Source: Dendrobates tinctorius (taxonomy: Eukaryota). Taken from it: a stretch of 64,000 nt of DNA. Positions 27,595-63,031 of this stretch are shown here, in pieces. The stretch is from assembly GCF_039654945.1 (NCBI RefSeq), contig NW_027361673.1:32736001-32800000 (forward strand), in the 5' to 3' direction. A model generated the notes under the pieces. It searched no databases, was not told the origin of the DNA, and saw only the letters and a list, made by a program, of their open reading frames with translations. Position 1 is the first letter of the stretch, and each line of letters starts with the position of its first letter. The position numbers were made by a program, and so were the translations under genes.

Positions 27595-27902
27595 TACGGA
27601 GCCCGGTATCCCCGGGTCCTGTGTGCCATAGACTGTGCTTGTGTAAAAGACTTTGCGAAATTGGAGCCAATTGCCGCCATTGCCGCGCTGCTTGGTGCGT
27701 GCGGGGTGAAGAAGGGGCGGGCCTTCGTGGGCGGAGCCTGCCACAGAGCGCGAAGAAGTGAAGTGCCGCACGGGAAGAGGACAGCACGCGAGAGAAGGAG
27801 GAGCTGAGGCCTACAGCCGGAGCGTCGGGCCTGCGAAGCGGCCGCCGGTGAGCTCACACAACCCCCCCGGCCCTGGCTAACGTTAACTAGGGGGGGAAGA
27901 GA

Positions 27903-34317: not shown

Positions 34318-35700
34318 ATGGGAAACAGTCAGGGGAAAACAGTGGTAGAAGGAAAATTGTTAAGTGAGATAATAAAGGACAGATGTGGAAGTAGTGCAGC
34401 AAAGGACCTAAAAGCAGTATTAAGAGAGTTTAAGTTAAAAGGTAAAGAAGCTCTAGATGAAGAAAAGTGGAAGGAGATAAAAGACATAAAATCAGGAAGA
34501 ATTGCAGACAATGAGTGGGGGGAACAAGTGGAGGCATGCATTAAAGTATCACAGGTTGCTAAGCGAGAGAACTGGGCATATAATGAGAAAACAAAACGAT
34601 GGATTCGTCCCAAAGAATTTAGCCCTGTGTCAGAGAAGCAGGAACCACCACCATATCCTGCCCCAGCCCGTATAACAACCCCACCTGCAGCACCGGTTAT
34701 ATCACTGCCCACCGGACTGTGCCCTGATGTACAATCACCATTACCTAGCAATGGCGATCTAGGATGGACTTGTAATAATTGTGGTCAACAAAATCCAGAC
34801 TGGAGAGAGACGTGTCTAGCCTGTGGAGCACCCCGTTACCATCACCCTAGCAGATTAGCCCCCGTTAGGACCCAAATACGCCCTTTCAGGGAAACAGATG
34901 AACAGGGTGTTACCCGCACCAGACAGATTCAGACTACCCATTATACTCCATGGTCCGCTCCAGAATGTATGGCATTATTGTCTAATGCTCCAGATCCCAC
35001 TACCTTTCCTATGGGGTTTGCCCGGTACATAAGACAAGTACTGACTGTACACAGAGGGACCTGGTTGGATGGGGAAGACTTATGCAGATTAAAACTACCA
35101 ATAACTACCCAAGGGGAGTTTTCACAGATTGTTGGACCAAATAGACCCACTGATAATGATCAAGAAGGTAATCCTCGAACTCAGGCTTCGAGAGAGCCCT
35201 TTTTAACTGCCCTTGACAATTTTATGCAGACGAAGCAGAGACAGAGAGGTAACATGACAGCCATACCGCAGAAACCGGGACAGTCAGTGACCGATTTCTT
35301 TCGGATATTGGAAACGGCGTTCCAAGATGAGGGTCTTGATACAAATAATGAGGGGGTATCACGACTATTAGCAAAAGCCTTTATGGAAGGGTTGCTCAAA
35401 GAAATACGAGATCCCCTGAAAATAAGCACCCCTGATTGGAGATCAGTACCTGATGTCCATGGATTAAGACAAAAAGCTATGGGCATTGAATTAGATTTGC
35501 AGGAAAGGAAGAATGCACCACCGGCCAAAACAAGAGTAGCGGTGACCCAATTTGACAACCAAGGACATCCAATCAATGAGGTTAGGAGGAGAACTTTTAC
35601 ATGTCATTACTGTAAAAAGCCAGGTCATTTCCAGAGAGATTGCCGTAAACGAAAAGCGGATAGAGAATCTCAGCCTAGGAGGGAGGAACCTACTAACTGA
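34318..35700 (+). CDS. gag: ERV Gag, open reading frame intact
   Basis: MGNSQG myristoylation-type start, PPPY late domain, RanBP2-type finger, MHR-like QKPGQSVTDF, CCHC CHYCKKPGHFQRDC. Confidence 0.92.
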   Translation: MGNSQGKTVVEGKLLSEIIKDRCGSSAAKDLKAVLREFKLKGKEALDEEKWKEIKDIKSGRIADNEWGEQVEACIKVSQVAKRENWAYNEKTKRWIRPKEFSPVSEKQEPPPYPAPARITTPPAAPVISLPTGLCPDVQSPLPSNGDLGWTCNNCGQQNPDWRETCLACGAPRYHHPSRLAPVRTQIRPFRETDEQGVTRTRQIQTTHYTPWSAPECMALLSNAPDPTTFPMGFARYIRQVLTVHRGTWLDGEDLCRLKLPITTQGEFSQIVGPNRPTDNDQEGNPRTQASREPFLTALDNFMQTKQRQRGNMTAIPQKPGQSVTDFFRILETAFQDEGLDTNNEGVSRLLAKAFMEGLLKEIRDPLKISTPDWRSVPDVHGLRQKAMGIELDLQERKNAPPAKTRVAVTQFDNQGHPINEVRRRTFTCHYCKKPGHFQRDCRKRKADRESQPRREEPTN

Positions 35701-38700
35701 CTAGGTGCAGTTAGAATGCAACTTGATTCTAGGGAACCAGTAGTTAAAATCAAAGTAAATGGAAAAAAGGTACCTTTTCTATTAGATACTGGAGCAACCT
35801 CTTCAGTGGTTAATGACAAAGTAATAACTCCAGATCTCCTTTCAGAAAACTCGACCTTTGTTTCAGGATTTAGTGGACAATCTAGCTTAATCCCTTTTAG
35901 CAAACCTCAGAGTTAAAGTAGGACCTAAAATGTTTCTGAATAAATTTTTGTTTGTCAAAAAAGCACCAATTTGCCTATTGGGAGTAGATGTACTAAAGAA
36001 ACTGCAGGCAGATATCAAATTTACTGAAGATGGTACAGTACACCTTACCATTCCAGATGAGGAAGGGGATGCTATTGAGGCTTGCATGATAATTCAAGCT
36101 CTCGAGTCACAAAATCATGATGACACCACATCACAACCATGGGACTCAGCCCTAGACGAATTACCTGATACCTTATGGGCAAAAGGGAATGCGGATATTG
36201 GCTTACTTCCCGTATCCCCAGTTGTGGTAGAGGTGCCCGCAGACACAAGACTGCCACAGCTGCGGCAGTACCCTATCAGTGCCCAACAAGAGGCTGCTAT
36301 TGAGGCACAAGTCACTGATCTTGTAAACAATGGAGCATTGGTGTCAATTAAATCACAAGCTAATACGCCATTGTTTCCTGTCAAAAAGAAAGGAGGACCA
36401 GGTGATGCCCCGAAATATCGCATGGTACATGATCTGAGAGAGATAAATAAGGTCCTTGTTCCTTTGACACCAGTAGTACCTAACCCACACACGCTATTGG
36501 CAAAAATCCCTAGTCAATCGAAATGTTTTTCAGTGATTGATTTGTCAAACGCATTTTTCTCAGTGCCCCTCCACAAAAGCTGTTAGCATCTGTTCGCTTT
36601 TACATTTAAGGGCAAACAATATGCCTGGACCAGACTGCCACAGGGCATGCAGCATTCACCCACACTGTACACGCAGGCATTGCAATCTGTGTTGGCCGGC
36701 TGGCCACACCCACCTGATATTGTGCTCTTACAATATGTGGATGACCTGTTGCTTTGTGCACCTGATGAGGCTAACTGTAGAATCCATACACTTTCACTAC
36801 TGATGTTTTTATCAGACAATGGATGTAAGGTCAACAGAGAAAAGTTACAGTTTTGCCAACCAAAAGTCGTATTCTTAGGACATTGTCTATCACACGGTAC
36901 CCGACACTTAACCAATGACAGAATTACAATTGTACAACAAATGAAGGAACCGACAACCCACAAGCAGTTGAGAGCATATTTGGGTTTAGTTTCGTCTTGC
37001 CGCCAATGGGTCATACATGCTAGTGAACATATGCAGCCACTGTATGATTGCATCAACACAATACCTTTCCAACTGACTGACATTGCACGAGACTCATTTC
37101 AGTATCTGAAGAAGGCCATAGTGTCAGCCCCAGCATTAGGTATACCTAACTATGATATACCCTTTCAACTGATGGCCGCTGAAATTAGAGGGCATGCTAC
37201 TGGCATTTTGACACAGAAACATGACAAAAAGAATAGACCCCTTGCATACTATTCTGCCAAACTAGACTCAGTAGCACAGGGAACACCATCCTGTGTTAGA
37301 GCAGTCTCTGCAATCGCATTGCTACTTGACAAAGTTTCTGATATTGTACTGGATAACCCACTAACTGTCTGTACCACACATGATATATACGGTATCCTGA
37401 ATCAGGTTTCTGCTAAACATATTTCTATGGCAAGACAACTCAGATTGCAATGTGCCTTGCTTATGCCTCCTAATGTTACATTTACTAAAACTCAGAATCT
37501 GAATCTGGCTACATTGTTGCCAATTGCAGATTCTGAAGGGGGGGATATAGATGAGAACACATTATCGCTTTCTTTTGAGCCCCCACACGAGGTTGAACAT
37601 GATTGCATAGAACTGATGCAGCAAGAAGTTGTTGGCTTGCCCAATGTCACAGACACACCATTGTCAAATCCAGACTTTATATTTTTTGTGGATGGCAGCA
37701 GATATGCCGATGAAAGTGGAAAATTCCACACAGGATATGCGGTAGTGTCACCACATGAGACTATTGTAGCAAAGGCACTTCCACCCCACATGTCCGCACA
37801 AGAGGCTGAGCTGACAGCTCTGAATGAGGCATTAAAACTTTCCAAAGGACAAACAGCAAATATCTACACTGACTCAAGATATGCCTTTGGGATAGTACAT
37901 GATTTTGGGGTTTTGTGGCGCACAAGGGGTTTCATGACAGCAGCAGGAACACCCATAAAACATGCCACACTGATCAGAGACATCCTCGAGAATGTGGCCC
38001 AGACACAGGGGGTGGCCGTTATGAGGGTGCCAGCACACACCAGAAAAGACAACATGGAAGCAAAAGGCAACGAGAAAGCAGACCAGGCGGCGAAGCAAGC
38101 TGCCTTGGGGACTCCAGAAAAAGTAAACATAGTGCACAAGGATGCATCAGAATTGTTTACAGACTTACAAAGGTTCCAAGAAGACTCCGCTCAGACGGAC
38201 AAGGAAACTTGGGAAAAGATGGGAGCTGAGAAGACGAACGGAATGTGGAAGAAAGATCAGAAGTACTGCTTGCCTAGGGTTTTGTACCCAAGGATGGCAG
38301 AAGCAGTTCACCTTCCAACTCACATGTCCGCCAATGGAATGACGCGCCTAGTCACGAAGGTTTGGATTGCTCCTGGGTTTGGGAAGGTGGCGCAGCTACA
38401 CTGTATCTCCTGTCCCATATGCCTAGCACACAATCCCGGACAGGTAGTGAAAACTCCACGGAAACACAGTCCTAGGCCGTTATATCCCTTCCAGAGACTA
38501 CAGATCGACTACATTCAACTCCCCAGAAGTGGACCATATGAATATGTTCTGGTGTGTGTTGACATGTTCTCTGGATGGCCAGAGGCCTACCCGGTGAAAA
38601 CGGCTACAGCTCGAGCCACTGCAAAGAAACTAGTGATGGAACTAGTACCACGATTCGGTGTTCCTGAAATAATTGAATCAGACAGAGGCACACATTTCAC

Positions 38701-39277
38701 TGCTGAGGTAATGCAAAATGTAATGCAAATGATAGGTGTAGAACAAGCATTTCATACACCCTACCACCCACAGAGTTCAGGGAAGGTAGAAAGAATGAAT
38801 GGGACACTAAAATTAAAAATACAGAAAACCATGGAACAGACCCATAGACCATGGCCAGAGTGTCTTCCGTTAGCATTATTCTCAGTAAAGTACACACCCA
38901 TGGGGAAAACTAAACTGTCACCCTTCGAGATATTGTTTGGAAGACCACCAAACACAGGGTTGTACTACCCACAGGTCTTAACACTCAATGTGGATAATTT
39001 GACAAGTTATGTAATCCAGTTGCAAAAGCATTTAACTCAAATGCATTCTCTAGTTTTCTCTTCCATTCCAGATCCAGATAGTGTGGAAGGAACTCACTGT
39101 CTACAACCCGGTGATTACGTATATGTCAAGAAACACTCCAGAAAGACCCTTGAACCCCGATATCAAGGACCTTACCAAGTACTCCTAACAACGCCTACTT
39201 CTGTTAAGTTGGAAGGACGACCAACCTGGATCCACGCATCGCATTGCAAACTAGCCACAGGAATTAACAAAGCATAA
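35701..39277 (+). pseudogene. pol: ERV pro-pol with a frameshift near 35907 and TAG at 36584-36586
   Basis: LLDTGA, LPQG, YVDDLL, FVDGS (RNase H), HHCC, QIDY..SDRG..YHPQSSGKVER, GPY. Confidence 0.93.
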
Positions 39278-39286
39278 GAGTGCATA

Positions 39287-42128
39287 ATGTTTTGGTTTGG
39301 TTTTGTTGCATTATCTGTAATAATGGTAGCTGCGTGGGACAGTCTAAATTCTCCAATGTCCTTGAATAATAAGTTTATACAACATCATAAAAAATTACTG
39401 AATGATTGGTCAAATGACACTCAGTCTCCAGCAGATTGCTGGATCTGCACACATTCACCAGTATCAGCCACCAGTATTCCGTTCCTTGTTATTCCTGTGC
39501 CACCCAAGGAATTATTTGCCTGGACCAGTTGTTCTGATACACTTGCTAATAATGCCACAAATAATGTGAAGTTATGGAACACAACGGTTGGTATACCCAT
39601 TGTGGGATGGGTAGGATATCCCTGGTGGCAAGGTAACCTTTCAGGAAGTAGTACTCACCTTCAATATCTGGCATATAAGGGGGGGGCTTGGGTACCTAGG
39701 AATAGAACCCGGTTAACCTACTTGGGACAAGTTCCAACGTATGGTTTACAAGTTAGCTTTAATGTAACTTCCCATTCTACTGATGCCTTCAAACCAATGT
39801 TGCTAGAAAGAAAGTTACATAATATGTCATGAGAGTACTCCAATTTATTTCCCCAGGGCACTAACAAAACTTGTATTAATATTCCTGGTAATATGCCTTG
39901 TAACGAGTCCTCGGAATATAAGAAGGGAACCTCCCCTTGTGGAAACCCTGATGCAGGTTATTGTAGTCCTTTAGGACAATTTTCACCTTGGTGCATGCTC
40001 CAGAATGCATCTGCGTTCATAGATTTAGTTCATAGACTGGTACTACAACATTCAGCCCTATGGGACCTACCTAGTGACATGTACTGGGTATGTGGAGACA
40101 ATGCATATAAATGGTTGCCAGTAGGGGTAAAAGGTGCTTGTACTCTGGGTCGTTTGACTCCAGCTACCTTTGTTATTCCGAATGACCAGTTGAGTACTCA
40201 GAGCATACCTAAACACACGTTGTACAAAAGAGCTGCTGATAACACAGGTCAACGAAAAAAAATTTTTTTTCTGGTGTCCAAAATATTTTAATGAATTTGG
40301 GGTATTTTTGGGGTGCTGATTCTGAATATGTCATCAGTTTTGCCAGATTGGCTCAGGTTTTTGAGATTTTTGGTATCTTATTTATAGCACTTGTTGGTAA
40401 ATGCGACGCATCATCTCATTAATTTCTTTGGATTAGTACTTGAACTGAGCAGTTCTCAATATAGTTTTGTGTTAATTAGTGTTCTAAAAGTTTGTTCATA
40501 GCTTGATTTTTGCACTAACTTTATGTTGTTGTCTGTTTTCCAGTGAAAAGCATGAACTCATCATGAAGAAGTTGTCTTAACGATCCAGACTCATTCTGTT
40601 ACATTTGTGGTGAATATACACTGCCAAAACATAGAAGAAACATAACACACTTCGTAAAAAAAGTGTATTTTGCCTATTTTGGGGTTATGCTTGGGGACCA
40701 AGACAAGTTTTGGGCACCACACATAGTGTGCAAAGCATGTATCGAATTATTACGAAAATGGAGCAAAGGACAAAGAAAAAGCTTCAAATTTGGTGTTCCA
40801 ATGGTGTGGAGAGAGCCAAAAAATCATCATGATGACTGTTATTTCTGTGCAGTGCAAGTGCAAGGATTCAATAAGCATAAGAAACGAAAATGGGAGTAAC
40901 ATGGAATCTGCAAGAAGGCCTGTCCCTCATTGTGAAGATGTGCCTGTACCTGTGTTTACCATAAATAACAGTCATCATGATGATTTTTTGGCTCTCTCCA
41001 CACCATTGGAACACCAAATTTGAAGCTTTTTCTTTGTCCTTTGCTCCATTTTCGTAATAATTCGATACATGCTTTGCACACTATGTGTGGTGCCCAAAAC
41101 TTGTCTTGGTCCCCAAGCATAACCCCAAAATAGGCAAAATACACTTTTTTTACGAAGTCTGTTATGTTTCTTCTATGTTTTGGCAGTGTGTATTCACCAC
41201 AAATGTAACAGAATGAGTCTGGATCGTTAAGACAACTTCTTCTTGATGAGTTCATGCTTTTCACTGGAAAACAGACAACAACATAAAGTTAGTGCAAAAA
41301 TCAAGCTATGAACAAACTTTTAGAACACTAATTAACACAAAACTATATTGAGAACTGCTCAGTTCAAGTACTAATCCAAAGAAATTAATGAGATGATGCG
41401 TCGCATTTACCAACAAGTGCTATAAATAAGATACCAAAAATCTCAAAAACTTGAGCCAATCTGGCAAAACTGATGACATATTCAGAATCAGCACCCCAAA
41501 AATACCCTAAATTCGATGAAATATCTTTGGCACCAAAAATGCTGTTGACCAGTGTAATACACCTCGCCTCTCTGGAAGACCACACATAGTGCAGATGAGT
41601 GTGGCCAATAAAATTGTTAGCTCTATTTTTATCTACCCTATGATCACTCAAATGTGGGATAAATTAGTTAGAGCTACAGATTATTTAGATGACCAAATAT
41701 GGGATATATTGGATATACTGAACACCACTGTTGCTGTTCAAAATCAGCTTATCATAGTCACTAATCAGCATACCATAGTACTAGATTATTTAACTGCAGC
41801 ACAAGGAGGTATGTGTCAAGTCATCGGACCCGCTTGCTGTCATTATATAGATCCTGACAAAACTTTAAGATTAAAACTAAAATTAGAGGATGTTCAAAGA
41901 CTCAGAGATCAGTATGATAAAGACAATGATCGCAATAAAGATAGTTGGTGGTCAGATACCTTCTCCTTTTTGAATCCAGCCAATTGGTTTAAAGGTATAG
42001 GGGGTTGGATAGCTGGAATTATATTAAGCCTACTACGTATCTTTGTTTGTCTTTTCGTAATATATGTATTTTTAAAATTCGTTTTTTGGTGTTTAACTGT
42101 GTGTAAGAAAAGATACAGAAACAGATGA
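39287..42128 (+). pseudogene. env: ERV env (gamma-type) with TGA at 39830-39832 and a transposon just after the furin site
   Basis: Signal peptide, CWIC, LYKR, ISD-like NQHTIVLDYLTAAQGG, CX6CC, hydrophobic TM. Frame is restored when 40243-41557 is removed. Confidence 0.92.
40243..41554. mobile_element. Chapaev3-type (CMC superfamily) fold-back non-autonomous transposon
   Basis: CAC(A/T)GGTCAAC termini, TSD TAA. Both arms encode CLNDPDSFCYICG..CKAC..PMVWREP..HHDDCY, resembling the Chapaev transposase N-terminal Zn domain. Confidence 0.85.
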
Positions 42129-48370: not shown

Positions 48371-51300
48371 TGTGAGTTCTAAATGTTGGTTTGGAAAGTT
48401 GTTTTCTCAACACAACCAACTTCTCCTGATGCCCTTCTAGAAGTGCATATGAATGATATAGAGGGTAATTCCTAACTTGGGCACAATGGAAAATTGATCT
48501 GTAAGGAGGGGGCTGTAATATATCATTCCCTAGAGACAGTAATAATTGACATTGCTCTATCAATTGACTCATTTATTCAAACTGCTTCTATTGTTTGGTG
48601 AGTATAATAAGAGCTCTTTTTTGTGTTATGCAGAGTACATTTGGAACTTATCTTCAGCATTCTAGAATACTGTATATGAGGGCTTATAGGTGCTGGCCCT
48701 ACTTTTATATTGGAAAAACCTGGTGACAGGTTTCCTTTAATCCCTTTATGACCTTGACCGCATAGGTACACCCAAGGTTGTCTCCCTGCCTTTGATGTGG
48801 GCTCCACTGCCGAGCCCACATATTTTCCAGCACATGACAGCTGATTTAATCAGCTGATTTAATCAGCTGTCAAGTGCCTCTAACAGCCACAGGTGGAATC
48901 TCTGACAGCGGCATTTAACTTGCACAAATCGGATGTGCATCGTAAAACACGTCCATTGGCGCCATTGTCACGTGATTGCGGGGCACCGATGGGTTGTCCT
49001 CATAGCCGGAGATCTGCAAAAGAGAACATCCTGTCATTAAAAACCTCCTATGAATGCTGCCTCATAGCAGGCGTTCATAGGCGATCAGCATTTATGATTT
49101 GGATTATCGCATCTTCAAGCCTCCTAAGCAGACTATTGAAGCAAGTAAAAAGTAAAAAAAACAAGTGTTTTAAAAATATAAAATTTTTTTAAAAAGTTCC
49201 AATCACCACCCTTTGCCCCATTCAAAATAAAGCAATAAAAAAATATACACATGTTTGGTATCACTGAGTACAGAAATGTTTGATCTATCAAAATATAAAG
49301 TAAATTAATCCAATCAATAAATGGCATAAAGAGAACAAAAATCTAAACGCTAGAATTATGTTTTTTTGATTTCCGTAACAGTCCAATGAAATACAATAAC
49401 AAGCAATCAAAACATTGTATCTACCCCAAAATGTTATCAATAAAAACGTCAGCTCAGCGCGCAAAATGTAAGTGGGTCGCCCGCCAGGGCCCTGGGGTAC
49501 TCGGGGGCCGGGCCCGTTGATGTTAATAGGAGATGTCACAGTGGCAGTGACCCGGTCCGTGGCCCTGGGCATCCATGTAAAAGGGGTAGAGTTATGGGGA
49601 TAATGTCATTGAGATGATTCGTGATGCCACCTGTGGTTTCTGGTCAGGTTGACCAGCGCTGCAGGGATGCTTCTCTGGGACAGATGGTGTGGCGCAGCAA
49701 TGATGGTGTAGCCCTCCACAGGTAGGGCTGTAGTCCCAGGGCAGTGTAGATGGAGAGATAGTGAGGAGAGCGTAATGGTGCAGTGTTAAGCACAGAGATG
49801 TAGCAGTGCTGAGTGGGTTGGCGCAGGAATAAGCGGAGGACACCAGGGCATGTAGTTCCAAAGCTTTACTCACAGTCTGTTGTGCATACAGGTGCCTGCA
49901 TCAGTGCCGTGTCCTCCAGGTCAGGGGCTCAGCCAACCTCCAGGCAAGATGAAGTACTCCGTTCCAACACTCTGCCAACATATTCCTTTCCTGAACGTCT
50001 CCTTTCTAGCGCTTGTAATGAAGTACTTGTGGTTGTGTGTTAAACCTAAGTTCCTCCTTTAAGATGTTCCTTTGAACTCTACTTGTACGGCAGACAGCTG
50101 TAGCCTGCTTCGGGGACTCCTCGCTACTAAGTCCCGACTCACTCACGTTGCTGTTGTGCCCCCAAGTCTTGTGTGGGAATAAAGTTGTGACAACTTCTAT
50201 TCCTCAGGTGTCTGCTGCAGGACCATTAGTATCCATACAACCTCGGGGACCGGACCCCGGCCATGCGCTTAGAACTTGAGGAAGGGTTCCACTCCGACCC
50301 TAGTCTTTAGTTCTCTTCTTCTCCTTACGTTCCGCACCAAACTATCTTCCTTTTGGAGAATCAGGCTTTCTATATCTCTTTCCCGTGCCAGCAGCTCCAG
50401 GTCACAGGAGACTGCTGCAGCACCTCCTTCCATCCATCCCACTCAGGGGATCTCCTCTCACCGACTGACCTAGTCCTAATCATCTCCCGCTCACTTGTGC
50501 AGCTAAGTTCCACCCACCTCCCAGCACTCTTCGTGTTTCAAGCAGGGAGCCACCAAAGGTGCTTTGCTACACTACTATGTTGTGTGGGATGCAGGTGTTG
50601 GAGTGTGGTCAGGTGTCTCCACCTTACCTGGATGGTGGGGAACCACACCTCAGGAGGAGGTGCAGTACCTCTGTGGCGACTGAACTCTCAGAGGCGCCAC
50701 ATACACCCCCCCCGTTAAACACAGCACGTCCGCGGGCTGCAAGTGAAACAAAGATATTACAAAAGGAACATACAACATTTTTAAAATGCTTGATAAACAA
50801 TTCTTAAACTAAACTTCCCAATATGGGAGGCATTGACTCTTGAACATTGCAGAACAATTTAACAGACTATCACTTAACATATTACCTAATTTAAAGTGCT
50901 ATTAAAAGGAATCAAGGCTTAATAAGTTTACTACCTATTCAAGTATCAATCTTCAACACATTTTCCTTTTGTCATTCACATTTTCACATTCTACTGTCTC
51001 TGCTAGACCATGGGTGACAACCACTAACTCCTGGTTCGTCACCGGAATTCAAAATTTTTTATTCAAAGTTTCACACCTTTATTAAAACATCACTATGAGG
51101 CTAAACTCTGTAGAAAATCTATTCTATTGCTATAACTATACTCTATTGCTATTAATACTTTTATCAAAGGCTATAACTACAACCTATTCTTATAAAATAA
51201 ATGCTTTTACTATTAATACTAAACATTATTTATTAAGACATTAGGTATGATTATTCTTGAGTGGTGTTGACACTGGTCCAGCCAGGATGTCTTGCAATGT

Positions 51301-52134
51301 CCTTATGGTCCTTATGGTGGGAGCAGAACTCCAAGTCTGAGGTAGTCCTTATTGAAGAAGGTTTATGTAAAACCAAGAGAGGGCACCCTAAAAGGCGCAA
51401 CTATTTACAAGAGAGTTTGTGATTCACTTCAAGTTCATGATCACTGCAGTTTTTATTTCAACAACACTAATGCCAACTAATGCACAATCGAAGAAAACAT
51501 GATAACCAACTGGGGCACAACGGTGCCAATACCCTCCTGGGTAACAGTTTAAACTATTCAGTTTGTTGCAGTCATTTTTGGATGCTTCCTTATTGGTGGT
51601 CTCCTCAGGGGTGAACCTAGCCTCTCTGCTGCCTGAGGCGAACAGCAAAATGACGCCCCCCCCCACACACACACACACACAGTAAATTCTCATATCTATC
51701 CTGTAAAACGGAGTACAGTAGTGGACATTTTGATTTAGATAAATAGAAAAAAAAGGTGTCCAAACACAAGGATGTCAGCGCCATCACACGCACATAGAAG
51801 AACAACACGTAAGTATCCAGAACAAGGGTCAATAATGGCAATGGTAGGCCTGCCACAGGGCCAGACTGGGACAAAAATGCAGCCCTGCCACACAAATCCC
51901 ACCAGCCCACAAACTATAACACTCCTCACCCCGATCAGTGAATTTTTGCTATACTTTGTTGTCCCCTCATCACTATCTTTAAGGAGTTATTTGAAGAGCC
52001 ACATGTGAATGGCACCACAGTGCGTATGACTGACCACAGCTCCATTTACATGGTGCTCTTCAAAGCTATGTTTCCCAGGATCATGGGGGTCCCAGCGGTC
52101 AGATCCACAACAAACAAAGTCATCCCCTATACCC

Positions 52135-53287
52135 ACATAATGCTCCATACAGTATTATGTGCCACATATATTACTTCGTACAGTATAATGGGCCCCATAT
52201 AATGCTCCATACAGTATAATGGGCCCCATATATTACTTCATACAGTATAATGGGCCCCATATAATGCTTCAAACAGTATAATGGGCCCCATATATTACTT
52301 CGTACAGTATAATGGGCCCCATATAATGCTCCATACAGTATAATGGGCCCCATATATTACTTCATACAGTATAATGGGCACCATATATTACTTCATACAG
52401 TATAATGGGCACCATATATTACTTCATACAGTATATTGGGCCCCATATATTACTGCATACAGTATAATGGGCACCATATATTACTGCATACAGTATAATG
52501 GGCACCATATATTACTGCATACAGTATAATGGGCACCATATATTACTTCATACAGTATAATGGGCACCATATATTACTTCATACAGTATAATGGGCACCA
52601 TATATTACTTCATACAGTATATTGGGCCCCATATATTACTGCATACAGTATAATGGGCACCATATATTACTGCATACAGTATAATGGGCACCATATATTA
52701 CTTCCTACAGTATAATGTGCCCCATATATTACTTCGTACAGTATAATGGGCCCCATATAATGCTCCATACAGTATCATGGGCACCATATATTACTTCATA
52801 CAGTATAATGGGCACCATATATTACTTCATACAGTATAATGGGCACCATATATTACTTCATACAGTATATTGGGCCCCATATATTACTGCATACAGTATA
52901 ATGGGCACCATATATTACTGCATACAGTATAATGGGCACCATATATTACTTCCTACAGTATAATGTGCCCCATATATTACTTCATACAGTATAATGGGCA
53001 CCATATATTACTTCATACAGTATAATGGGCACCATATATTACTTCATATAGTATAATGGGCACCATATATCACTTCATACAGTATAATGGGCCCCATATA
53101 TTACTTCATACAGTGTAATGGGCACCATATATTACTTCATACAATATAATGGGCACCATATATTACTTCATACAGTATAATGGGCACCATATATTACTTC
53201 ATACAGTATAATGGTCCCCATATATTACTTCATACAGCATAATGGGCACCATATATTACTTCATACAATATAATGGGCCCCATATAA
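52135..53287. repeat. 31-bp minisatellite (CATATATTACTTCATACAGTATAATGGGCAC)
   Basis: Direct tandem units, period 31. Confidence 0.95.
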
Positions 53288-53568
53288 TTCTTCTCCCCAA
53301 ACCCCGCTGCTCTGGTCTCCTCAGTGTATTCTGATCCTCCGCAGTGCTTGGCAGAGACATCATTAACTACGTATATAATTGTCCACTTGGACTGATAGTA
53401 ATAGTGATTTGTTTGTACTCTGTTGTCTGGGGCTGGCCCACTTTATGGGGGTGCGCAGGGCATATGATTATACACCAGTAAAAAGTATGAGAGGCTCAAT
53501 ATGACCAGTGCCACCTAGTTTCCTACCCCTCTTATTGTACTGGTACTGTGGGAACACTGACTGGTACT

Positions 53569-53790
53569 GAGAAAAAGAAAGAAAGAAAGAACAGAGAGAA
53601 AAAAAAAACAGAGAAAGAAAGAAAGAACAAAGAGAGAAAGAAAGAGGGGAAAGAAAGACGAGAGACAGAGAGAAAGAAAGAGGGGAAAGAAAGAAAGAAA
53701 GAAAGAAAGAAAGAAGAAAGAAGGAAAGAAAGAAAGAACCGAGAGAAAAAAAAGAAAGATTAGAGAGATAAAGAAACAGAGAGAGAAAGA
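53569..53790. repeat. (GAAA)n-type purine repeat
   Basis: Direct observation. Confidence 0.9.
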
Positions 53791-54189
53791 TTCTATAAAG
53801 ATACTATAGCAGCCCGGCTCCCACTATAGTGCCCACCTGAGCCTCCCGATGCAGGACATATCATGATCTGCTTACATGGCCGGCAACCCCGAGTCCAAGG
53901 CGATCCTGCTGTCCGTGCTGTTGGAGGAGGACACGGTGATGGATCTGAAACATTCCCTGAAGTGCCTCCATGGTTCCGTCACAATCTCCTCCCGAAATTA
54001 CCTAATTTCCGTTCAGCTTCTAGCACATCACTTCCAGTAGAACGTCACGTGCGAATTTTAAAGTACTCTACGGGGGTCTGCCGTGTACTCCTGTGTCAGC
54101 GGGAAAAGTAAGCTCCCAGCCGGGGCAGTGGGACAGAATCTCCCTCAAAATCGGGACTGTCCTGCAGGGAGGTATGAATGCTCCCCACC

Positions 54190-54862
54190 ATACACCTTGT
54201 ACACGTATGGCTCTGCACACATCATAAACATACGGTTCTGCTTTTTATGCCTCGCCCACACACAGCTCCGCTCTGTACACCTCGCACACACACAGTTCCA
54301 CTCAGTACACACATGGCTCCACTCCGTAAACCTCATACACATGCGGCTCTGCTCCGTACACCTTATACACACGTGTTATACACACGTGGCCACGCTCTGT
54401 AAACCTTGTACACAAATGGCTCCACTCCGTAAACCTTGTACACATGCGGCTTTGCTCCATACACCTTGTACACTCGCAGTTCCGCTCCATACACCTCGCA
54501 CACACGCGGCTCCGTACACCTCACACATGTGCGACTCTGCTCCGTACACCTCGTACACGTGCGGCTCTGCTCCTTACACCTCGCACACGTGCTGCTCAGC
54601 TCCGTACACATCTCTGCTCCGTACATGTGCAGCTCCACTCCGTGCACCTCGTACATGTGCGGCTCCGCTCCGTGCACCTCGTACATGTGCGGCTCCACTC
54701 CGTGCACCTCGTACATGTGCGGCTCCACTCCGTGCACCTCGTACACACGCACGGCTCCGGTCCGTGCGCCTCGTACACACGCACGGCTCCGCTCCATACA
54801 CCTTGTTCACACACACGGCTCCGCTCCGTACACCACGTACACACGCGGCTCTGCTCCTTACA
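54190..54862. repeat. 30-bp minisatellite (GGCTCCACTCCGTGCACCTCGTACATGTGC)
   Basis: Tandem units, period 30. Confidence 0.9.
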
Positions 54863-54979
54863 CAGGGCTGGGCTGAGACCAAAAAGCAGCCCTGACACAA
54901 AAAAAAATCACCAGCCCACATACAATGAATGTCCTCACCCAAATCGTAGAACACTGGTAGGTTGTGCCAACTTTTGATT

Positions 54980-56730
54980 TAGCTCACACACACACACACA
55001 CACACACACACGTACCACACAGCTCACACAAGTAGCTCACACACAGCTCACACGTATCACACACACAGCTCACACGTATCGCACACACAGCTCACACGTA
55101 TCGCACACACACACACAGCTCACATGTATCGCACACACACAGCTCACACATATCGCACACACAACTCACACGTATCACACACACACAGCTCACACGTATC
55201 ACACACAGCTCACACGTAGCACACACAGCTCACACACAGCTCACACGTAGCACACACACACAGCTTACACGTAGCACACACACACAGCTCACACACACAG
55301 CTCACATGTATCGCACACACACACAGCTCACACGTATCACACACAGCTCACACGTATCACACACCCAGCTCACACGTATCACACACACAGCTCACACATA
55401 TCACACACTCTGTATCACAGCTCACGCTCACACAAGTAACTTACGTACATGTATCACACAGCTCACGCTCACACAGCTCACACGTATCACACACACACAG
55501 CTCACATATCGCACACACAGCTCACACGTATCACACAGAGCTCACACGTATCACACACACAGCTCACATGTATCGCACACAGCTCACACGTATCACACAC
55601 ACAGCTCACACGTATCACACACACACACAGCTCACACGTATCACACACAGCTCACACGTATCACACACAGCTCACACGTATCGCACACAGCTCACACGTA
55701 TCGCACACACAGCTCACACGTATCGCACACACAGCTCACACGTATCGCACACACAGCTCACACGTATCGCACACACACACAGCTCACACGTATCACACAC
55801 ACACACAGCTCACACGTATCACACACAGCTCACACGTATCACACACAGCTCACACGTAGCACACACACACAGCTCACACGTATCACACACAGCTCACACA
55901 TATCACACACACAGCTCACATGTATCGCACACACACAGCTCACACGTATCACACACACAGCTCACACGTATCACACACACAGCTCACACGTATCACACAC
56001 TCTGTATCACAGCTCACACACAAGTAGCTCACACAGCTCACGCTCACACAAGTAACTTACGTACACGTATCACACAGCTCACGCTCACACAGCTCACACG
56101 TATCACACACACAGCTCACACATATCGCACACACAGCTCACACGCATCACACACAGCTCACACGTATCGCACACAGCTCACACGTATCGCACACACACAC
56201 AGCTCACACGTATCACACACAGCTCACACGTATCACACACAGCTCACACGTAGCACACACACACAGCTCACACGTATCACACACACACACAGCTCACACG
56301 TATCACACACACACACAGCTCACACGTATCACACACAGCTCACACGTAGCACACACACACAGCTCACACGTATCACACACAGCTCACACATATCACACAC
56401 ACAGCTCACACGTATCGCACACACAGCTCACACGTATCACACACCAAGCTCACACGTATCACACACCCAGCTCACACGTATCACACACCCAGCTCACACG
56501 TATCACACACCCACACAGCTCACACGTATCACACACACACACAGCTCACACGTATCACACACTCTGTATCACAGCTCACACACAAGTAGCTCACACAGCT
56601 CACAGTCACACAAGTAACTTACATACACGTATCACACAGCTCACGCTCACACAGCTCACACGTATCACACACATGTATCACACAACTCACACGCATGTAT
56701 CACAGCTCACACACACAAGTAGCTCACTCA
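54980..56730. repeat. CA-rich minisatellite, CAGCTCACACGTAT(CA)n
   Basis: Tandem units of ~20-26 bp. Confidence 0.95.
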
Positions 56731-57007
56731 CGATGACAGACAGCAGTCCTGCATAAAACACAAGGAATGATGCGCACAGGACCTGTGATGAGGTCACAGG
56801 AGGGGATGAGTCATTGGTCACATGATCAGGGGGCCCTGACACCTTCCCTCCTGTGACCGCATCAATTACAGCCTCTTGCACGACCGCAGCATCAGCGTGC
56901 AGAGGCTAAATTGTAGGTGCTGCGGGTAGAGGAGCGCATAATGCCGCACCCTGCTGCCTGCCGCTTGAGCAGCTGGTGCAAATCGCCTCATTATAGGTGC
57001 GGCCCTG

Positions 57008-58662
57008 GGTCTCCTCCTGGGGTAGTGGAAGCTGGTTTCTTTTGCTGCTTCCAGGGGAGATTGTCTGCTTTTCCACCTCCTGGTGAGTTAACAAATTGCA
57101 GGTATTCCTTCTGTTGGGCTTTGGGGATGGCTGCCTGTGCAGATGAGGTGGCAGCTGGTGGAACTGCTGCCTGTGGTACAGCAGGGGTAACAACTTGTAC
57201 CTGGGGATGTTGTACTCTGGTGGACGTGGCCTGCTTTGCCTTTGTAGGTACAACTACCACGGTGGGAGGCATCCCTGCTGGGGGAACGTAGGCTTTCTCC
57301 TTCTTGTAGGCTGCTATAAAGCCCTCCGGTATGCGGCGCACGTTCAGGTGCATACCAGCCGCGAAGCCCCTCATGCCGGGTGAAGGTGACATACTCTCCC
57401 GGATATAAATCACGAGCAGGGTGTCCCCTCCGGAAGTGGGACTCTACATCCCTCCAGCTGACAAAGAGGTCTGAGATCCTCTGGGGATCTGAGATGAAGC
57501 CAAACCCCCTTTCCAGGTTAAAATTCATGACCTGACCCAATCCTGCTGAGTCCCGGGGACCGTAGTGACCGGCATGGGCCCTTTCTTTCCGGTCCATTTC
57601 AGGGCCCAGCACTGCCAGTCTCCGCTGATCCCGCTCCCTCTGCTGCCAGCTGGCGGATGGTCTGCTGGCATCGGGCCTCTCCTCCTCTTCTCGAGACCGG
57701 CCTCTGCCCACAGTGGACAGAGGCACCACTGCCAGGGGTTCAGGTGTTCCCCCCCAGGGACTAGAATCCCAGTCCCAGACTAGATCCAGCACGACCTGCC
57801 CGGACGTTGTAGCAGAAGGGCACCCCGAGGCCTCCCCAGCTGCAGGGGTGGCGGTCATACCTGATGCCTCTTGGCGGTGTCGTCTTGGCTCCGGTGCAGG
57901 CACTGGGCAGCAGCGGTGGTCACTTGAGCTGCCTGGTCCACGGGCGGCGACGGATGCTGACTCCGGGTCTGCTGAGGCCTCCGGTGGGACCTGCGTGGCC
58001 ACGCTAGGTCCAGGCAGGAGCGCAGTCGCCGTCTCCTCTTCAGCTCCCAGGCCCTCGGGTAACTCCTCCTGGCAGGCAGCAGCGTCCGGCTGTGGTGCCA
58101 GGGTGGAGGCGGCAGCAAACACTGGCGGCGATGTTACGGGTGCCGCGGAGGTAGCAGACGCTGCTGGCGGTGAGGCTGATGCAGCGGTGACAGGTACTGG
58201 TGGTGGAGGTACCGTTGGTGTAGGCCCCTCCTGGACGCGCTGCAGGTTCATGGTCCACAGAGCCTCCTGTTTCAGCCGCAGACGGTGGGTCAGCTGGGCA
58301 ATTTCGTCCTCCAGCTGCTGGCGTTCCATGGTTGAAGCGGGGTCGGAGCCTTCAATCAGTGCACCAAGGAAGATCAGCTCGGCCTCCTCGCGCTCTTCAA
58401 GCCTCCGTGCTTCTTCCAATATGGCGTCCTGGCGTTCTCTCTCCTTCCTGGGCTCCTTTCACACCACAGGGCCTTGCTTCTCCTTCTGGGGGGCGGCGTC
58501 TTCTTCCTCTGCCTCCATACCAAGCCAGTATACGAACCCCTCTGGGGGTGGGCCATGTTGCTGTCGCATAGAAGTTCAGGCAGGGGACGCCCAGGACAGT
58601 TTGCGCTCTTTTCTTAGGGCCACCCATGTTGTCACGCCCTTCTTCACCACGCCGGCGGCCAT
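57008..58662 (-). pseudogene. Cold-shock-domain protein (Y-box/Lin28-like CSD at ~57336-57537); last codons lie at 51590-51597 beyond the hAT insertion
   Basis: GQVMNFNLERGFGFI..DLFVSWRDV..DLYPGEYVTFTRHEGLRGWYA/LNV. Start AAAATGGCCGCC. Two TGA stops (58576-58578, 58459-58461) and one extra base near 57348. Confidence 0.85.
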
Positions 58663-58776
58663 TTTGAGAGTCCATTTTACAGTCTATCAATTTGGCTATT
58701 CTGCACATTCTCAACAATCTCAAATCCAATGTAATAAATCTTCAGCACACAGGACCCGGTGGTACCGGGCTTCGTC

Positions 58777-58794
58777 ATCCTGTTCGTGACGCCA
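58777..58794 (-). other. Primer-binding site, tRNA-Ser(CGA)
   Basis: Plus strand ATCCTGTTCGTGACGCCA, 4 nt from the LTR end. Confidence 0.88.
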
Positions 58795-61792
58795 AAAATG
58801 GGTCGCCCGCCAGGGCTGTGGGGTACTCGGAGCCGGGCCCGTTGATGTCAATAGGAGATGTCACAGTGGCAGTGACCCGGTCCGTGGCCCTGGGCGTCCA
58901 TGTAAAAGGGGTAGAGTTATGGGGATAAAGTCATTGAGATGATTCGTGATGCCACCAGTGGTTTCTGGTCAGGTTGACCAGCGCTGCAGGGTTGCTTCTC
59001 TGGGACAGATGGTGTGGTGCAGCAATGATGGTGTAACCCTCCACAGGTAGGGCTGTAGTCCCAGGGCAGTGTAGATGGAGTGATAGTGAGGAGAGCGTGA
59101 TGATGCAGTGTTAAGCACAGAGATGTAGCAGTGCTGAGTGGGTTGGCGCAGGAATAAGCAGAGGACACCAGGGCATGTAGTTCCAAAGCTTTACTCACAG
59201 TCTGTTGTGCATACAGGTGCCCGCATCAGTGCCGTGTCCTCCAGGTCAGGGGCTCAGCCAACCTCCAGGCAAGATGAAGTACTCCGTTCCAACACTCTGC
59301 CAACATATGCCTTTCCTGAACGTCTCCTTTCTAGCGCTTGTAATGAAGTACTTGTGGTTGTGTGTTAAACCTAAGTTCCTCCTTTAAGATGTTCCTTTGA
59401 ACTCTACTTGTACGGCAGACAGCTGTAGCCTGCTTCGGGGACTCCTCGCTACTAAGTCCCGACTCACTCTCGTTGCTGTTGTGCCCCCAAGTCTTGTGTG
59501 GGAATAAAGTGGTGACAACTTCTTTTCCTCAGGTGTCTGCTGCAGGACCATTAGTATCCATACAACCTTGGGGACCGGACCCCGGCCATGCGCTTAGAAC
59601 TTGAGGAAGGGTTCCACTCCGACCCTAGTCCTTAGTTCTCTTCTTCTCCTTACGTTCCACACCAAACTATCTTCCTTTTGGAGAATCAGGCTTTCTATAT
59701 CTCTTTCCCGTGCCAGCAGCTCCAGGTCACAGGAGACTGCTGCAGCACCTCCTTCCATCCATCCCACTCAGGGGATCTCCTCTCACCGACTGACCTTGTC
59801 CTAATCATCTACCGCTCACTTGTGCAGCTAAGCTCCAACCACCTCCCAGCACTCTTCGTGTTCCAAGCAGGGAGCCACCAAAGGTGCTTTGCTACACTAC
59901 TATGTTGTGTGGGATGCAGGTGTTGGAGTGTGGTCAGGTGTCTCCACCTTACCTGGATGGTGGGGCACCACACCTCAGGAGGAGGTGCAGTACTTCTGTG
60001 GCGACTCAACCCTCAGGGGCACCACATAAGCCCTCACCCAGCCCCAGATCCCGAAAAATTCAGACGCTACAGGTCTCCAAAAATGGCGCGATTGTTTTTT
60101 TCTTGCAAACTTTGGAATTTTTCACCACTTAAATAAAAAAAACATTGATATCTGGATACTCGTAATGACCTGAGGAATCATAATGGAAAGTCAGTTATAC
60201 CATACAGTGAACTTAGTAAATAAAAAAAACAAAAAACAATTGTGGAATTGCACTCTTTTTCTAATTTCATCCGTGATTGGAATTTGTTTCCCATTTTCCA
60301 GTACACTACCTGGTAAAATCGAATGTGTTGTTCAAAATTACAACTTGTTTAGCAAAAAAACAAGCCCTTAGACAGCCATATTGATGAAAAAATAAATAAG
60401 TTATGGCTCTGGGAAGAAGGGGAGCAAACGCAGAAAACGCAAAAGCGGAAAATTGCAAGGTGGTGTAGGCCTTAAATGAGATACTGTCATAATAATAAAC
60501 TCAATAAGCCATTGTTGCTCTGAAATATTTTGTTGTCTCCCTTCAGTTTCAGTAGAATTGTCAGAGCTGTTTCCTAAAATAATCCAATTATTCGAGCATT
60601 AGCTTCAAACTGAGGAGGCGTACTCATAGCTTATTATTATAGCCATGCTTTCTTGAGAACTCAGAACCTGATTGTCTTGTTGTTTTTTTTTCTACTAGTT
60701 GAAGCGTGGCTAAATTAACAGACATACACAGGGATAGAAGCTGATGTACTTGTGGTGTTACTGCGTAGTATTACATGAGCAAGCAAATCTAGATTAATAT
60801 ATAGGTCAGAAGTGGACATTTGCCTGATCTCATTACCTAACTGCTACTAAAGTCTCTAGCAATGCCGGCGTTTACCTATCTCATGCAGTTGCCGTTCCGA
60901 TGGAATTGGCATTCTTTGTCAGCAACGGAAGCACCAGAAGATCAGGTAATACTTGTAATCTGTATTTGAGAAATGTGCAAGGAATTGCCTAGCATATGTT
61001 TGCTTTTAGAAAGTGTTTGAAATGATACAGTGAACAGAGTAATGATGTTTTATATAAAAAGGTATAAATCTACATTTATTTTAATTCATTTCTTGTTATA
61101 TTGTACCATGAACTACAAGATCATGCCTACGATTTTTAATGTAGTGTTGCTTATAATAATTCTGGTTTCTATAACATACTAGTTTAAAGGCTATGTTGAC
61201 CTGGGTAATTTTCAGTTTTCGTAGGTATCATTGGTATTTGACCCTTTAAGAAAGTGGACTACTCTGTGCTTTAAGGGCCCTAAAATGTTTTATTGATCAC
61301 ATTCTGAAAGATGGAGGAGCAGGAGGAGTTGCTCAATTTCGCCGCTGCCGAGGCTTTTTATGAGTTGATATTTTAATTTTGGAACAGGTATAACATTTTA
61401 ATGGATTTTATTCCACTTTTTGGGTGTCCAAATGAACGGAAAACAGAAATTCTAACATTTTTATCACATTTATAACAGGGGTTAAGTAACATTATAATTT
61501 TAGTTTAAATTATTATGGATAAGGAGATACCAGTTAGTGTACTTTATTTTTTAAATAATAAAGCATTTGTAATAGGGTGTTTATATTTTATGCATCCTAA
61601 AATTACATTGCAAAAAAGAGATATGTAGAAGCGACAGAGGGAGCCCCCTACCTCAGGAAGCCTCTAAAGTGCTGTGGTCATGCTGAATGCATCATCTACA
61701 GGGTTATTACAGTACTGTATATTTATGTTTTCAGCAAACTTATTGTCTACATGTGAAGGTTGAGTGATAATGTGAAGGTTGAGCTGGGTTGG

Positions 61793-63031
61793 TGGGTCGC
61801 CCTCCCAGGGCTGTGGGGTACTCGGTATCTGGCCGGTATCAGCGGGATGTGTCACAGCAGCAGGGACCCGGTCTGTGGCCCTGGGCGCCCAAGTAATAGG
61901 GGAATGTAATGGTTTGAATGAATAGTTCGTGACGCCACCTGTAGTGTTCGGCAAGTGAGATGTTAGGCCAATGCTGCATGCAGATCCTCTGGGGCTGGTG
62001 GTGTGTTGCAGCCAAGATGGTGAAGCTCCCCACAGGTGGAGCTGTAGCTCCAGGGCAGGGTAGATGTAGGGGAAGAGGAGAGGCACAAGCGGTGTGGAAA
62101 CTGGTACCCAGATGAAGCGGGGCTGGATGCGTTGGCGCAAGAATGAATGGAGGACACCAGGGCTTGCAGTTCCAAAGCTTTACTCAGTCTGTAGTACACA
62201 CAGGTGCCTGCCTCCGTGCCGTGTCCTCCGGGTCAGGGACTCAGTCAACCTCCAGGCAAGATGGAATGCTCCCTTCCAACATTCCGCCAACATGTGCCTT
62301 TCTGAACGTCTCCTCTATAGCGCCTTTAAGTGTGAAGTACTCCCAGTACTGAGTTACACTGGAGTGCCTCCTGACAGATGTTCCTAAGAACTCTACTTGT
62401 ACGGCAGACAGCTGTAGCCTGCTTCAGGGACTCCCTACTCCTGAGTCCCGGCTCACTATCCAAGTTACTGTTGTGCCCCCAAGTCTTAGATGGGAGTAGT
62501 GCATTTACAGCCCACTACTCCACCGGTGTCTGCTGCAGAACCATTAGTGTCTATACAACCTCGGGGACCGGGCCCCAGCTTTGCGCTTAGAACTTCTAGG
62601 CAGGATTCTTCCTCTAACCCACGTCCTCTCTGTCCCCTTTTACTCCTTAGTTCCGTTCTAATCTCTCTCGCTTATGGAAGATCAGGTTTCAACTCAATGT
62701 CTTTCTCCTTCTTTCCTTTCTCGTGCCAGCAGACCCAGGTCACTCAGGTCTGCTGCAGCACCTCCTTCCTCAATCCCTCTCTCAGGGATCTTCTTTCCTC
62801 ACTCCTCTGAGTGGCTTCCTCTCCCAGACTGACCTGTAATTCTAAACCTTCCCGGTCTTTTGTCTATTCTCAACTCCACCCGCCTCCTAGTACGTTTCGT
62901 GTTCCAAGCAGGGAACCACCAAAGGTACTCTGCTACTCTCTAAGCAAGGAGCCGCAATGTGGCTTTGCTGAACTACTCTGTTGTGTGGGGTGCGAGTGTT
63001 GGAGCGTGGTCAGGAGCCTCCAACTTACCTG
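61793..63031 (-). mobile_element. LTR of the same Gypsy-related family (3' or solo), interrupted at 63032
   Basis: TGGGTCGCCCTCCC terminus, colinear with 58799-59955. No PBS adjacent. Confidence 0.87.

Follow-up and report, generated by a model that had tools for sequence, protein, structure and literature searches.

A gag-less LTR retrotransposon of frogs carrying a cold-shock-domain gene

What does an LTR element without gag and pol gain, if anything, from a single gene for a cold-shock-domain (CSD) protein? This question is raised by a locus in a 64,000-nucleotide stretch of the Dendrobates tinctorius genome (assembly GCF_039654945.1, contig NW_027361673.1, positions 32,736,001 to 32,800,000 of the forward strand; hereafter the window, in which all positions are counted). 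An earlier note, made from the sequence alone, described such an element here and interpreted it as a satellite of a related Gypsy element that makes its own RNA chaperone. We find that the observation in that note is confirmed in almost every detail, while its interpretation is supported only in part. None of the papers that we could search describes such a gene content.

We first examined the anatomy of the element (Table 1). Two long LTRs with TG..CA ends, a short target-site duplication, a PBS-like sequence and a polypurine tract (PPT) enclose a 2.7-kb interior, which is split by a nested hAT-like insertion. These features are those of an LTR retrotransposon, and the 8-bp duplication and short terminal inverted repeats of the insertion are those of the hAT superfamily. 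The tRNA-Ser identity that the earlier note gave to the PBS is putative, with no tRNA gene found in the window.

Table 1. Features of the CSD element and of two candidate helpers in the window. L001 and L002 are the two clean homologous elements from other frogs, L004 is a further compared locus, and P0008 is a family member whose structure was predicted.
Position	Strand	Feature	Observation
49469-49472		Target-site duplication TAAG (left)	Read directly; the same four bases follow the other LTR
49473-50701	-	3' LTR (1229 bp, TG..CA)	97.2% identical to 58796-60028 over 1234 aligned bases
50702-50716	-	PPT, directly before the 3' LTR	Run of eight G on the minus strand; surrounding stretch 74-77% alike to the same position in L002 and L004
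50717-51589	-	AT-rich 3' untranslated interior	No ORF of 60 aa or more on the minus strand
51590-51597	-	Last two codons and stop of the ORF, cut off by the insertion	Frame continues from D to HQ and the stop across the insertion site
51606-57007		Nested hAT-like non-autonomous DNA transposon (5402 bp), filled with tandem repeats	8-bp duplication AGGAGACC at 51598-51605 and 57008-57015; imperfect CAGGG... terminal inverted repeats CAGGGCCGCACCTA / CAGGGGTGAACCTA, matching at 11 of 14 bases; no transposase ORF
57008-57348	-	C-terminal Pro/Gln/Lys-rich tail of the ORF (second frame, after the extra base)	No Pfam family; length variants in other copies here are multiples of three
57333-57537	-	Cold-shock domain, split by one extra base near 57349	PF00313 above cut-off; most other copies lack the extra base
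57540-57660	-	Basic Glu/Arg/Lys-rich segment before the CSD	Second conserved part of the family; predicted as one long helix in P0008 (pLDDT 86-97)
57661-58458	-	Pro/Ala-rich, mostly disordered N-terminal half with one short charged helix	Not alignable between family members; equivalent part of P0008 has pLDDT below 50
58459-58461	-	In-frame TGA private to this copy	All aligned contigs of three runs read a sense codon
58516-58518	-	Likely start codon (ATG) of the family ORF	281 nt after the LTR, against 267 nt in L001 and 258 nt in L002; contigs of more abundant relatives leave the stretch at 58489/58490
58576-58662	-	Upstream ATG (58662) and first TGA (58578-58576); possibly a short upstream ORF in the leader	Aligned stretch in L001 lies upstream of its annotated start
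58735-58798	-	PBS (58777-58794) and conserved leader with a CCCGG..CCGGG hairpin	PBS-like 18-mer TGGCGTCACGAACAGGAT two bases after the LTR; aligned with the Gypsy at 27575, L001 and L002; hairpin obtained by folding, whole leader z = -1.6, not significant
58799-60026	-	5' LTR (1228 bp)	Paired with the 3' LTR
60027-60030		Target-site duplication TAAG (right)	Read directly
26556-32883	+	Candidate helper 1: degraded Ty3/Gypsy element	5' LTR ends near 27573, followed by the PBS (27577-27594), gag with a CCHC knuckle, protease, RNase H and integrase (Pfam; gag ORF)
33-2112	+	Candidate helper 2: end of a chromovirus pol and its 3' LTR, which ends at 2112	SH3_Tf2-1 plus chromodomain at 33-623 (Pfam)

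The single ORF is as the earlier note had it, with two in-frame TGA codons, one extra base and the insertion, and without the insertion its frame ends ...TPGGDHQ and a stop. However, three points need correction. (i) The note began the frame at the upstream ATG, whereas the distances in L001 and L002 indicate a start further downstream, and the first TGA may therefore lie in the leader. (ii) The note derived the second TGA from CGA by one C>T change, but every other aligned copy reads a sense codon that is not this one, which contradicts the assumed origin. (iii) The Gypsy at 26556 is not the closest LTR relative, as a closer one lies at the left edge of the window.

We then asked whether the domain is a genuine CSD. 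The profile PF00313 scores 31.5 bits against a gathering cut-off of 27 in this copy, even with the last strand lost to the frameshift, and 36.2, 33.7 and 32.1 bits in three homologues, while two others (23.7 and 24.1 bits) fall just below. The AlphaFold model of the family core is a helix plus a five-stranded barrel of the OB-fold type (pLDDT 78), and a Foldseek comparison of the model gave TM 0.86-0.90 to CspA/CspC/CspE (probability 1.00) and 0.77 to YB-1. A family profile hits YB-1/YBX2 best among solved structures (E 1e-9), spanning 68 residues with a single one-residue gap, whereas the bacterial Csp hits (E about 3e-8) span only 64 residues of the chain. The predicted nucleic-acid-binding surface is only partly canonical: RNP1 is kept (GFGFI here, GWGFI in relatives) with its aromatic residues, and RNP2 keeps F-V with its central Phe, but the His of RNP2 is replaced by Ser/Thr/Ala/Asn followed by Arg or Trp, and the Trp of strand 1 is also replaced.

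No gag or pol similarity was found. CSD is the only significant Pfam family in any member, all others having E above 0.005 and falling below their cut-offs, so that the element lacks the gag, protease, RT, RNase H and integrase genes of an autonomous Ty3/Gypsy element. The earlier note had named a diverged Gag at the N-terminus as a finding that would overturn its reading; neither Pfam, nor hhalign against the Gypsy Gag of the window (probability 0.1%), nor the predicted structure of P0008, which has no capsid-like helical bundle, supports this.

The element belongs to a multi-copy family. In total, 9428, 7225, 172 and 700 contigs from runs of four species lie on 56950-58900 at 80% identity or more, and most are open where this copy is broken. 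The only single-domain hits among 1.84 billion representatives are five proteins of dendrobatoid frogs, and intact, intronless homologues are annotated as 'uncharacterized protein' in Ranitomeya, Phyllobates and Anomaloglossus. Two of these lie in elements with near-identical LTRs (99.5% in L001 and 100% in L002), 4-5-bp flanking duplications and a 481-aa or 617-aa open frame as the only interior ORF, which indicates recent movement with the ORF intact.

Only the basic helix and the CSD are conserved within the family. The CSD signature persists although synonymous sites are saturated, with dN of 0.35-0.55 in the CSD against 0.66-2.5 in the preceding helix, and a ratio of 0.13-0.31 where computable. 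Furthermore, 7 of the 13 best-supported variants inside the CSD are synonymous, and five of the seven length variants whose inserted letters are known keep the frame, including all five in the tail. These estimates of selection rest on saturated distances and on a biased subset of 35 variants out of about 527.

We also compared the cis signals with those of potential helpers. The PBS (1 mismatch in 20) and about 60 nt of leader are shared with the Gypsy at 26556, and the PBS also with L001, but LTR patches of that Gypsy are only 70-77% alike. The chromovirus LTR at about 880-2112 (aligned 1181-2112), whose 5' end is outside the window, is 81% alike over 950 nt. This is the best in the window, and no helper with the same LTR has been identified. 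That the Gypsy at 26556 is the helper, as the earlier note chose, is not shown, and neither are its proposals that the protein is an RNA chaperone, competes for packaging, masks RNA or counters small-RNA silencing.

Taken together, the sequence analyses show a dead, fairly old copy of a high-copy non-autonomous LTR retrotransposon family derived from Ty3/Gypsy-type elements, in which the gag-pol region is replaced by one intronless ORF of roughly 500 aa encoding a disordered N-terminal half, a roughly 45-residue basic helix, one CSD and a variable tail; they also show that this copy is inactivated by an in-frame stop, a one-base insertion inside the CSD and the nested transposon. Both the mode of movement and the function of the protein are inferred, with no RNA or protein evidence behind them, the only possible RNA run being a guess. 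In this view, the element keeps the LTR termini, PBS, leader hairpin and PPT needed for reverse transcription and integration and shares them with autonomous Gypsy/chromovirus elements, which would supply Gag, protease, RT and integrase in trans. The protein most likely binds single-stranded RNA, preferentially the transcript from which it was translated, and would act in place of a nucleocapsid or chaperone protein, stabilizing the RNA of the element and favouring its entry into helper particles. Y-box proteins in retroviral RNPs provide a precedent (PMC6040738, PMC4486188), although a gene carried by a successful element can persist for some time without serving it. We consider this reading somewhat more likely than not (probability about 0.55).

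An alternative, which we regard as unlikely, is that a fragment of a host Y-box-type cDNA was transduced once into a Gypsy-derived element that had already lost gag-pol, and has been copied along passively ever since. Gene capture by LTR elements has been described (Bs1 of maize, PMC13317346), the nearest solved relatives are vertebrate Y-box CSDs, the N-terminal half and the tail evolve freely, and this copy is broken. However, the helix-CSD module is kept in subfamilies whose synonymous sites are saturated and whose remaining protein sequence cannot be aligned, the ORFs are intact in the elements with 99.5-100% identical LTRs, and most copies are open at the sites broken here. Slightly less likely still, the protein could act against other parties, as an interfering factor that binds helper RNA or Gag and so parasitizes the helper, as a shield against small-RNA silencing, or as a product co-opted by the host in some copies. 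Disordered regions plus one predicted RNA-binding domain would suit sequestration or condensate formation, NCBI annotates single copies as genes in four frog genomes, and the leader is shared with far more abundant relatives, so a leader-binding protein would meet their RNA as well; but nothing here shows any interaction, and the annotated genes that could be checked sit inside young LTR elements, not at conserved host loci. Finally, a strongly diverged Gag with a CSD in place of the zinc-knuckle nucleocapsid, which would make the element a gag-only derivative like BARE-2, is very improbable, because although the ORF sits in the gag position (about 260-280 nt after the 5' LTR) and a CSD could do the work of a nucleocapsid domain, there is no Gag family in Pfam and no hhalign match to the Gypsy Gag of the window, the predicted structure has isolated helices and disorder with no capsid fold, and no long polyprotein carrying this CSD appears among the 1.84 billion representatives.

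Among described systems, Bs1 is likewise an LTR element without pol whose ORF is built from non-retroelement sequence and which depends on helpers, but it carries fragments of three enzymes at low copy number, whereas here a complete predicted nucleic-acid-binding domain sits in the gag position, is conserved across subfamilies and species, and the family has thousands of copies. LARD, TRIM and BARE-2 elements keep LTRs, PBS and PPT shared with an autonomous partner; LARD and TRIM encode nothing and BARE-2 encodes a true Gag, while this family encodes a protein with no detectable Gag relationship. In replication-defective transducing retroviruses, a captured cell gene also replaces the coding region, cis signals are kept and propagation relies on a helper, but the present family is a long-lived and diversified germline retrotransposon family whose cargo is a predicted RNA-binding domain rather than a growth gene. 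The vertebrate Y-box proteins (YBX1/YBX2 and frog oocyte FRGY2) share one CSD flanked by disordered regions, and the CSD may have come from this family. The protein is nevertheless not a member: identity to the YB-1 and YBX2 CSDs is only about 32-33%, although the CSD of Y-box proteins is highly conserved, the retroelement family has its own loop signature (RRDVESHLPxGHPGRDLYPGD), the tails differ between members, no alternating basic and acidic C-terminal islands were seen, and the genes are intronless and lie inside LTRs, unlike multi-exon host genes. LINE-1 ORF1p resembles it in how it might work, as a retroelement protein that is not a capsid, with a long helix followed by a single RNA-binding domain, and is thought to coat its own RNA in cis. 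ORF1p belongs to a non-LTR element, its domain is an RRM and not a CSD, and its trimeric coiled coil is proven; any oligomerization of the frog protein would be by analogy only.

A more far-reaching possibility, which we put forward tentatively as less likely than not, is that a lineage of vertebrate LTR retrotransposons has swapped Gag for a CSD protein that forms the element's own ribonucleoprotein and lets it outcompete its chromovirus helpers for particles and reverse transcriptase. The family would then be a hyperparasite that added substantially to the genome gigantism of poison frogs, and a second, independent invention of an ORF1p-like strategy, this time inside LTR elements.

Non-autonomous LTR elements are usually thought to carry nothing, or at most a gag remnant. 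Here, an abundant, recently active vertebrate family has kept a foreign, predicted RNA-binding domain in the gag position across species. If the protein serves the element, it shows that a parasite of a parasite can bring its own RNA-handling protein, which would give a tractable system for asking how retroelement RNAs are chosen for packaging. The finding also bears on why dendrobatid genomes are so large and so rich in Gypsy-type sequence (PMC6278860), and it explains a set of 'uncharacterized protein' gene models in four frog genome annotations as transposon genes.

On the minus strand, the stretch forms a complete LTR retroelement. Its two LTRs are 97.2% identical over 1234 aligned bases, begin with TG and end with CA, and are flanked by TAAG on both sides. 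An 18-nt TGG... primer-binding site (PBS) lies two bases after the 5' LTR, and a run of eight G precedes the 3' LTR. Nested inside is a 5402-bp insertion with an 8-bp duplication AGGAGACC and imperfect CAGGG... inverted ends. It is almost entirely made of tandem repeats and carries no transposase, and is therefore a hAT-like non-autonomous transposon. Without this insertion the interior is about 2.7 kb, as the earlier note had stated. A tRNA search of the window found no gene, so the PBS is not assigned to a tRNA, and the predicted leader fold is not significantly more stable than those of shuffled sequences.

Features of the cold-shock-domain (CSD) element and of neighbouring or homologous elements (window positions unless a locus is named)
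Feature	Position	Strand	Description
3' LTR	49473-50701	-	
5' LTR	58799-60026	-	
Nested insertion	51606-57007		hAT-like
31-bp satellite in the insertion	52008-53300		at least 36 copies
GA-rich array in the insertion	53550-53780		
30-bp units in the insertion	54270-54880		
CA-rich arrays in the insertion	55000-56700		11/22-bp arrays
ATG proposed as start in the earlier note	58662	-	
First in-frame TGA	58578-58576	-	
Likely start codon (ATG)	58518-58516	-	281 nt after the LTR
Second in-frame TGA	58461-58459	-	
Extra base	near 57349	-	
Stretch compared with public contigs	56950-58900		
LTR end, PBS and leader of raised contig depth	58468-58800		many contigs diverge exactly at 58489/58490
Degraded Gypsy	26556 (start)		
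Gamma-type retrovirus-like element	34300-39832	+	appears to be nested inside the Gypsy
Chromovirus remnant at the left edge	33-2112	+	pol C-terminus with Tf2-1-like SH3 and chromodomain (33-623); 3' LTR ends at 2112
Further LTR of the same superfamily	61793-63031	-	72% alike over 1262 nt; same orientation as the CSD element
PBS of the Phyllobates element	L002 5186-5210		TGGCGTAGTCGGCAGGAT
Anomaloglossus locus L004	L004 1-9479		outer repeats 99.9% identical, 8.7 kb apart

A single frame runs from the leader to TPGGDHQ* across the insertion site, and is interrupted by two TGA codons, one extra base and the insertion. The longest open piece has a Pfam CSD hit of 31.5 bits against a cut-off of 27, although the last strand is lost to the frameshift, while the other pieces match no family. 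The pieces were searched separately, and natural intact homologues were used for folding. The likely start lies at a distance from the LTR close to those of two homologous elements, L001 of Anomaloglossus and L002 of Phyllobates (267 and 258 nt, respectively). The stretch around the upstream ATG proposed in the earlier note aligns with untranslated leader in L001, so the first TGA may not be a lesion. The observation made in that note, of an LTR element with a CSD gene interrupted by a hAT insertion, is otherwise borne out.

We then aligned public contigs to the ORF and its leader. At 80% identity or more, 9428 contigs of a run of the source species fit this stretch, along with 7225 of a second species, 172 of a third and 700 of a fourth. 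Nearly all contigs that cover the extra base lack it, and all that cover the second stop read a sense codon. Of the 13 best-supported variants inside the CSD, seven are synonymous, although this is a small, selected sample. Five of the seven length variants whose inserted letters are known keep the frame, including all five in the tail. Summed depth is 10-50 times higher over the LTR end, PBS and leader than over the rest of the ORF, and many contigs leave the stretch at one point. The LTR, PBS and leader are therefore shared with much more abundant relatives, and the CSD module begins at this boundary, which may mark the junction where it was acquired. tBLASTn of the ORF pieces against the window found no second copy and no similarity to either Gypsy.

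Word-indexed protein searches were swamped by Pro/Ala-rich words or found nothing, and only an exhaustive HMMER search of 1.84 billion representatives found the family, giving 72 hits. Only five of these match as a single stretch that includes the family's own loop signature. The other 67 match the query in two or more stretches, and the three that were inspected (P0001, P0014 and P0054) are multi-CSD proteins. The five are 'uncharacterized' or 'unnamed' proteins of Ranitomeya variabilis, R. imitator, Phyllobates terribilis and Anomaloglossus baeobatrachus (two proteins). The Anomaloglossus gene P0008 and the Phyllobates gene P0007 are single exons, and each lies between direct repeats (1284 bp at 99.5% identity and 1247 bp at 100% identity, respectively). 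Both elements have TG..CA-type ends, 4-5-bp flanking duplications, a PBS and a PPT, and the CSD ORF (481 aa and 617 aa) is their only interior ORF of 80 aa or more.

Two further loci have flanking repeats but are more complex. In addition to its outer repeats, L004 has an internal 263-bp exact duplication that overlaps the ORF start. In L005 (R. imitator) the gene model splices a CSD exon across 21 kb, and is probably a chimeric prediction. Between the Anomaloglossus and Phyllobates elements and the window, DNA similarity survives only at the cis signals, i.e. the U5 end, PBS and leader (82% over 104 nt) and the PPT region with the LTR start (74-77%). However, the Phyllobates element uses a different PBS from the window element, the window's Gypsy and the Anomaloglossus element, while the leader just after it is conserved. 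This suggests primer switching within the family.

Alignment of the six sequences reveals that only about 40 basic residues and the CSD are conserved, with the consensus G.VV.FN...GWGFI......DVFV.RRDVESHLP.GHPGRDLYPGD.VTFTRH.G.RGWYALHV. The N-terminal halves and the tails cannot be aligned, and BLASTP of the N-terminal pieces against P0008 found nothing, so homology is shown for the helix-CSD module only. AlphaFold2 on the family core predicts a long helix and a five-stranded barrel (mean pLDDT 78), while the full-length P0008 model adds two isolated helices and otherwise disorder, with no capsid-like bundle. A homodimer prediction for P0008:225-372 gave no answer and counts neither for nor against self-association. 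Foldseek matches CspA, CspC and CspE at TM 0.86-0.90, and YB-1, YBX2, Lin28, CRHSP-24 and Unr below that, all with probability 1.00.

A family profile ranks YB-1/YBX2 first among solved chains (E 1e-9, 41.5 bits), in an alignment with only a single one-residue gap that spans 68 residues of the chain, against 64 for CspA. CspA follows (E 3e-8), then Lin28 (1e-5), CRHSP-24 (9e-4) and CSDE1 (2e-3). The source is therefore probably a eukaryotic, Y-box-like CSD, but because the margin is small and identity is only about 33%, we do not classify the protein as a Y-box protein. In the same alignment the RNP1 aromatics and the central Phe of RNP2 are kept, while the strand-1 Trp and the RNP2 His are replaced. 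These positions contact RNA in YB-1.

We also compared the element with two autonomous relatives in the window. The degraded Gypsy encodes Gag with a CCHC knuckle, protease, RNase H and integrase. It shares the PBS (1 mismatch in 20), about 60 nt of leader including a CCCGG..CCGGG hairpin, and two LTR patches 70-77% alike. Its apparent nested gamma-type element has a gag with a RanBP2-type zinc finger plus a CCHC knuckle, and a pol with an MLV-type integrase C-terminus (Pfam). The LTR of the chromovirus remnant, which no PBS follows, is the closest relative of the CSD element's LTR in the window (81% over 950 nt). Neither is close enough to be named the helper, and dependence on such elements is an inference from the missing enzymes and the shared signals. 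The proposal of the earlier note, that the element is a satellite mobilised by the Gypsy and making its own RNA chaperone, is only partly supported. As for the copy in the window, an LTR divergence of 2.8% suggests an insertion some millions of years old, if usual vertebrate rates are assumed. It has since taken a stop, a frameshift and a nested transposon, and is not itself functional.

Our analysis shows a non-autonomous, high-copy, recently active family with a conserved helix-CSD ORF in the gag position. That the protein binds RNA, that it acts on its own transcript and that this helps stability or packaging are inferred, and no public run recorded as RNA was found to contain the stretch. 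Host Y-box protein joins retroviral RNPs and supports replication (PMC6040738, PMC4486188), and LINE-1 ORF1p offers a functional parallel, but both are analogies only. Alternatively, the ORF could be a passive passenger gene, or its protein could be aimed at the helper, the silencing machinery or the host. A diverged Gag has the least support, because no Gag family was found by Pfam, hhalign of the family against the window's Gypsy Gag gave no relationship and the predicted structure has no capsid-like bundle.

Gene capture by LTR elements is known from Bs1 of maize (PMC13317346), and non-coding or gag-only non-autonomous elements are also well known. By contrast, full-text literature searches found no paper that describes a retroelement-encoded CSD, and two poison-frog transposon studies do not mention one, although a consensus for this family may exist in Repbase or Dfam without the domain having been remarked on.

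Finally, we examined selection on the conserved module. Synonymous sites are saturated in most pairs of family members (dS above 1.5 or not computable), and only three ratios could be computed in the CSD, at 0.13-0.31. dN is 0.35-0.55 in the CSD and 0.66-2.5 in the helix before it. Together with intact ORFs in elements with identical LTRs, this argues that lineages which keep the CSD are the ones that go on copying.
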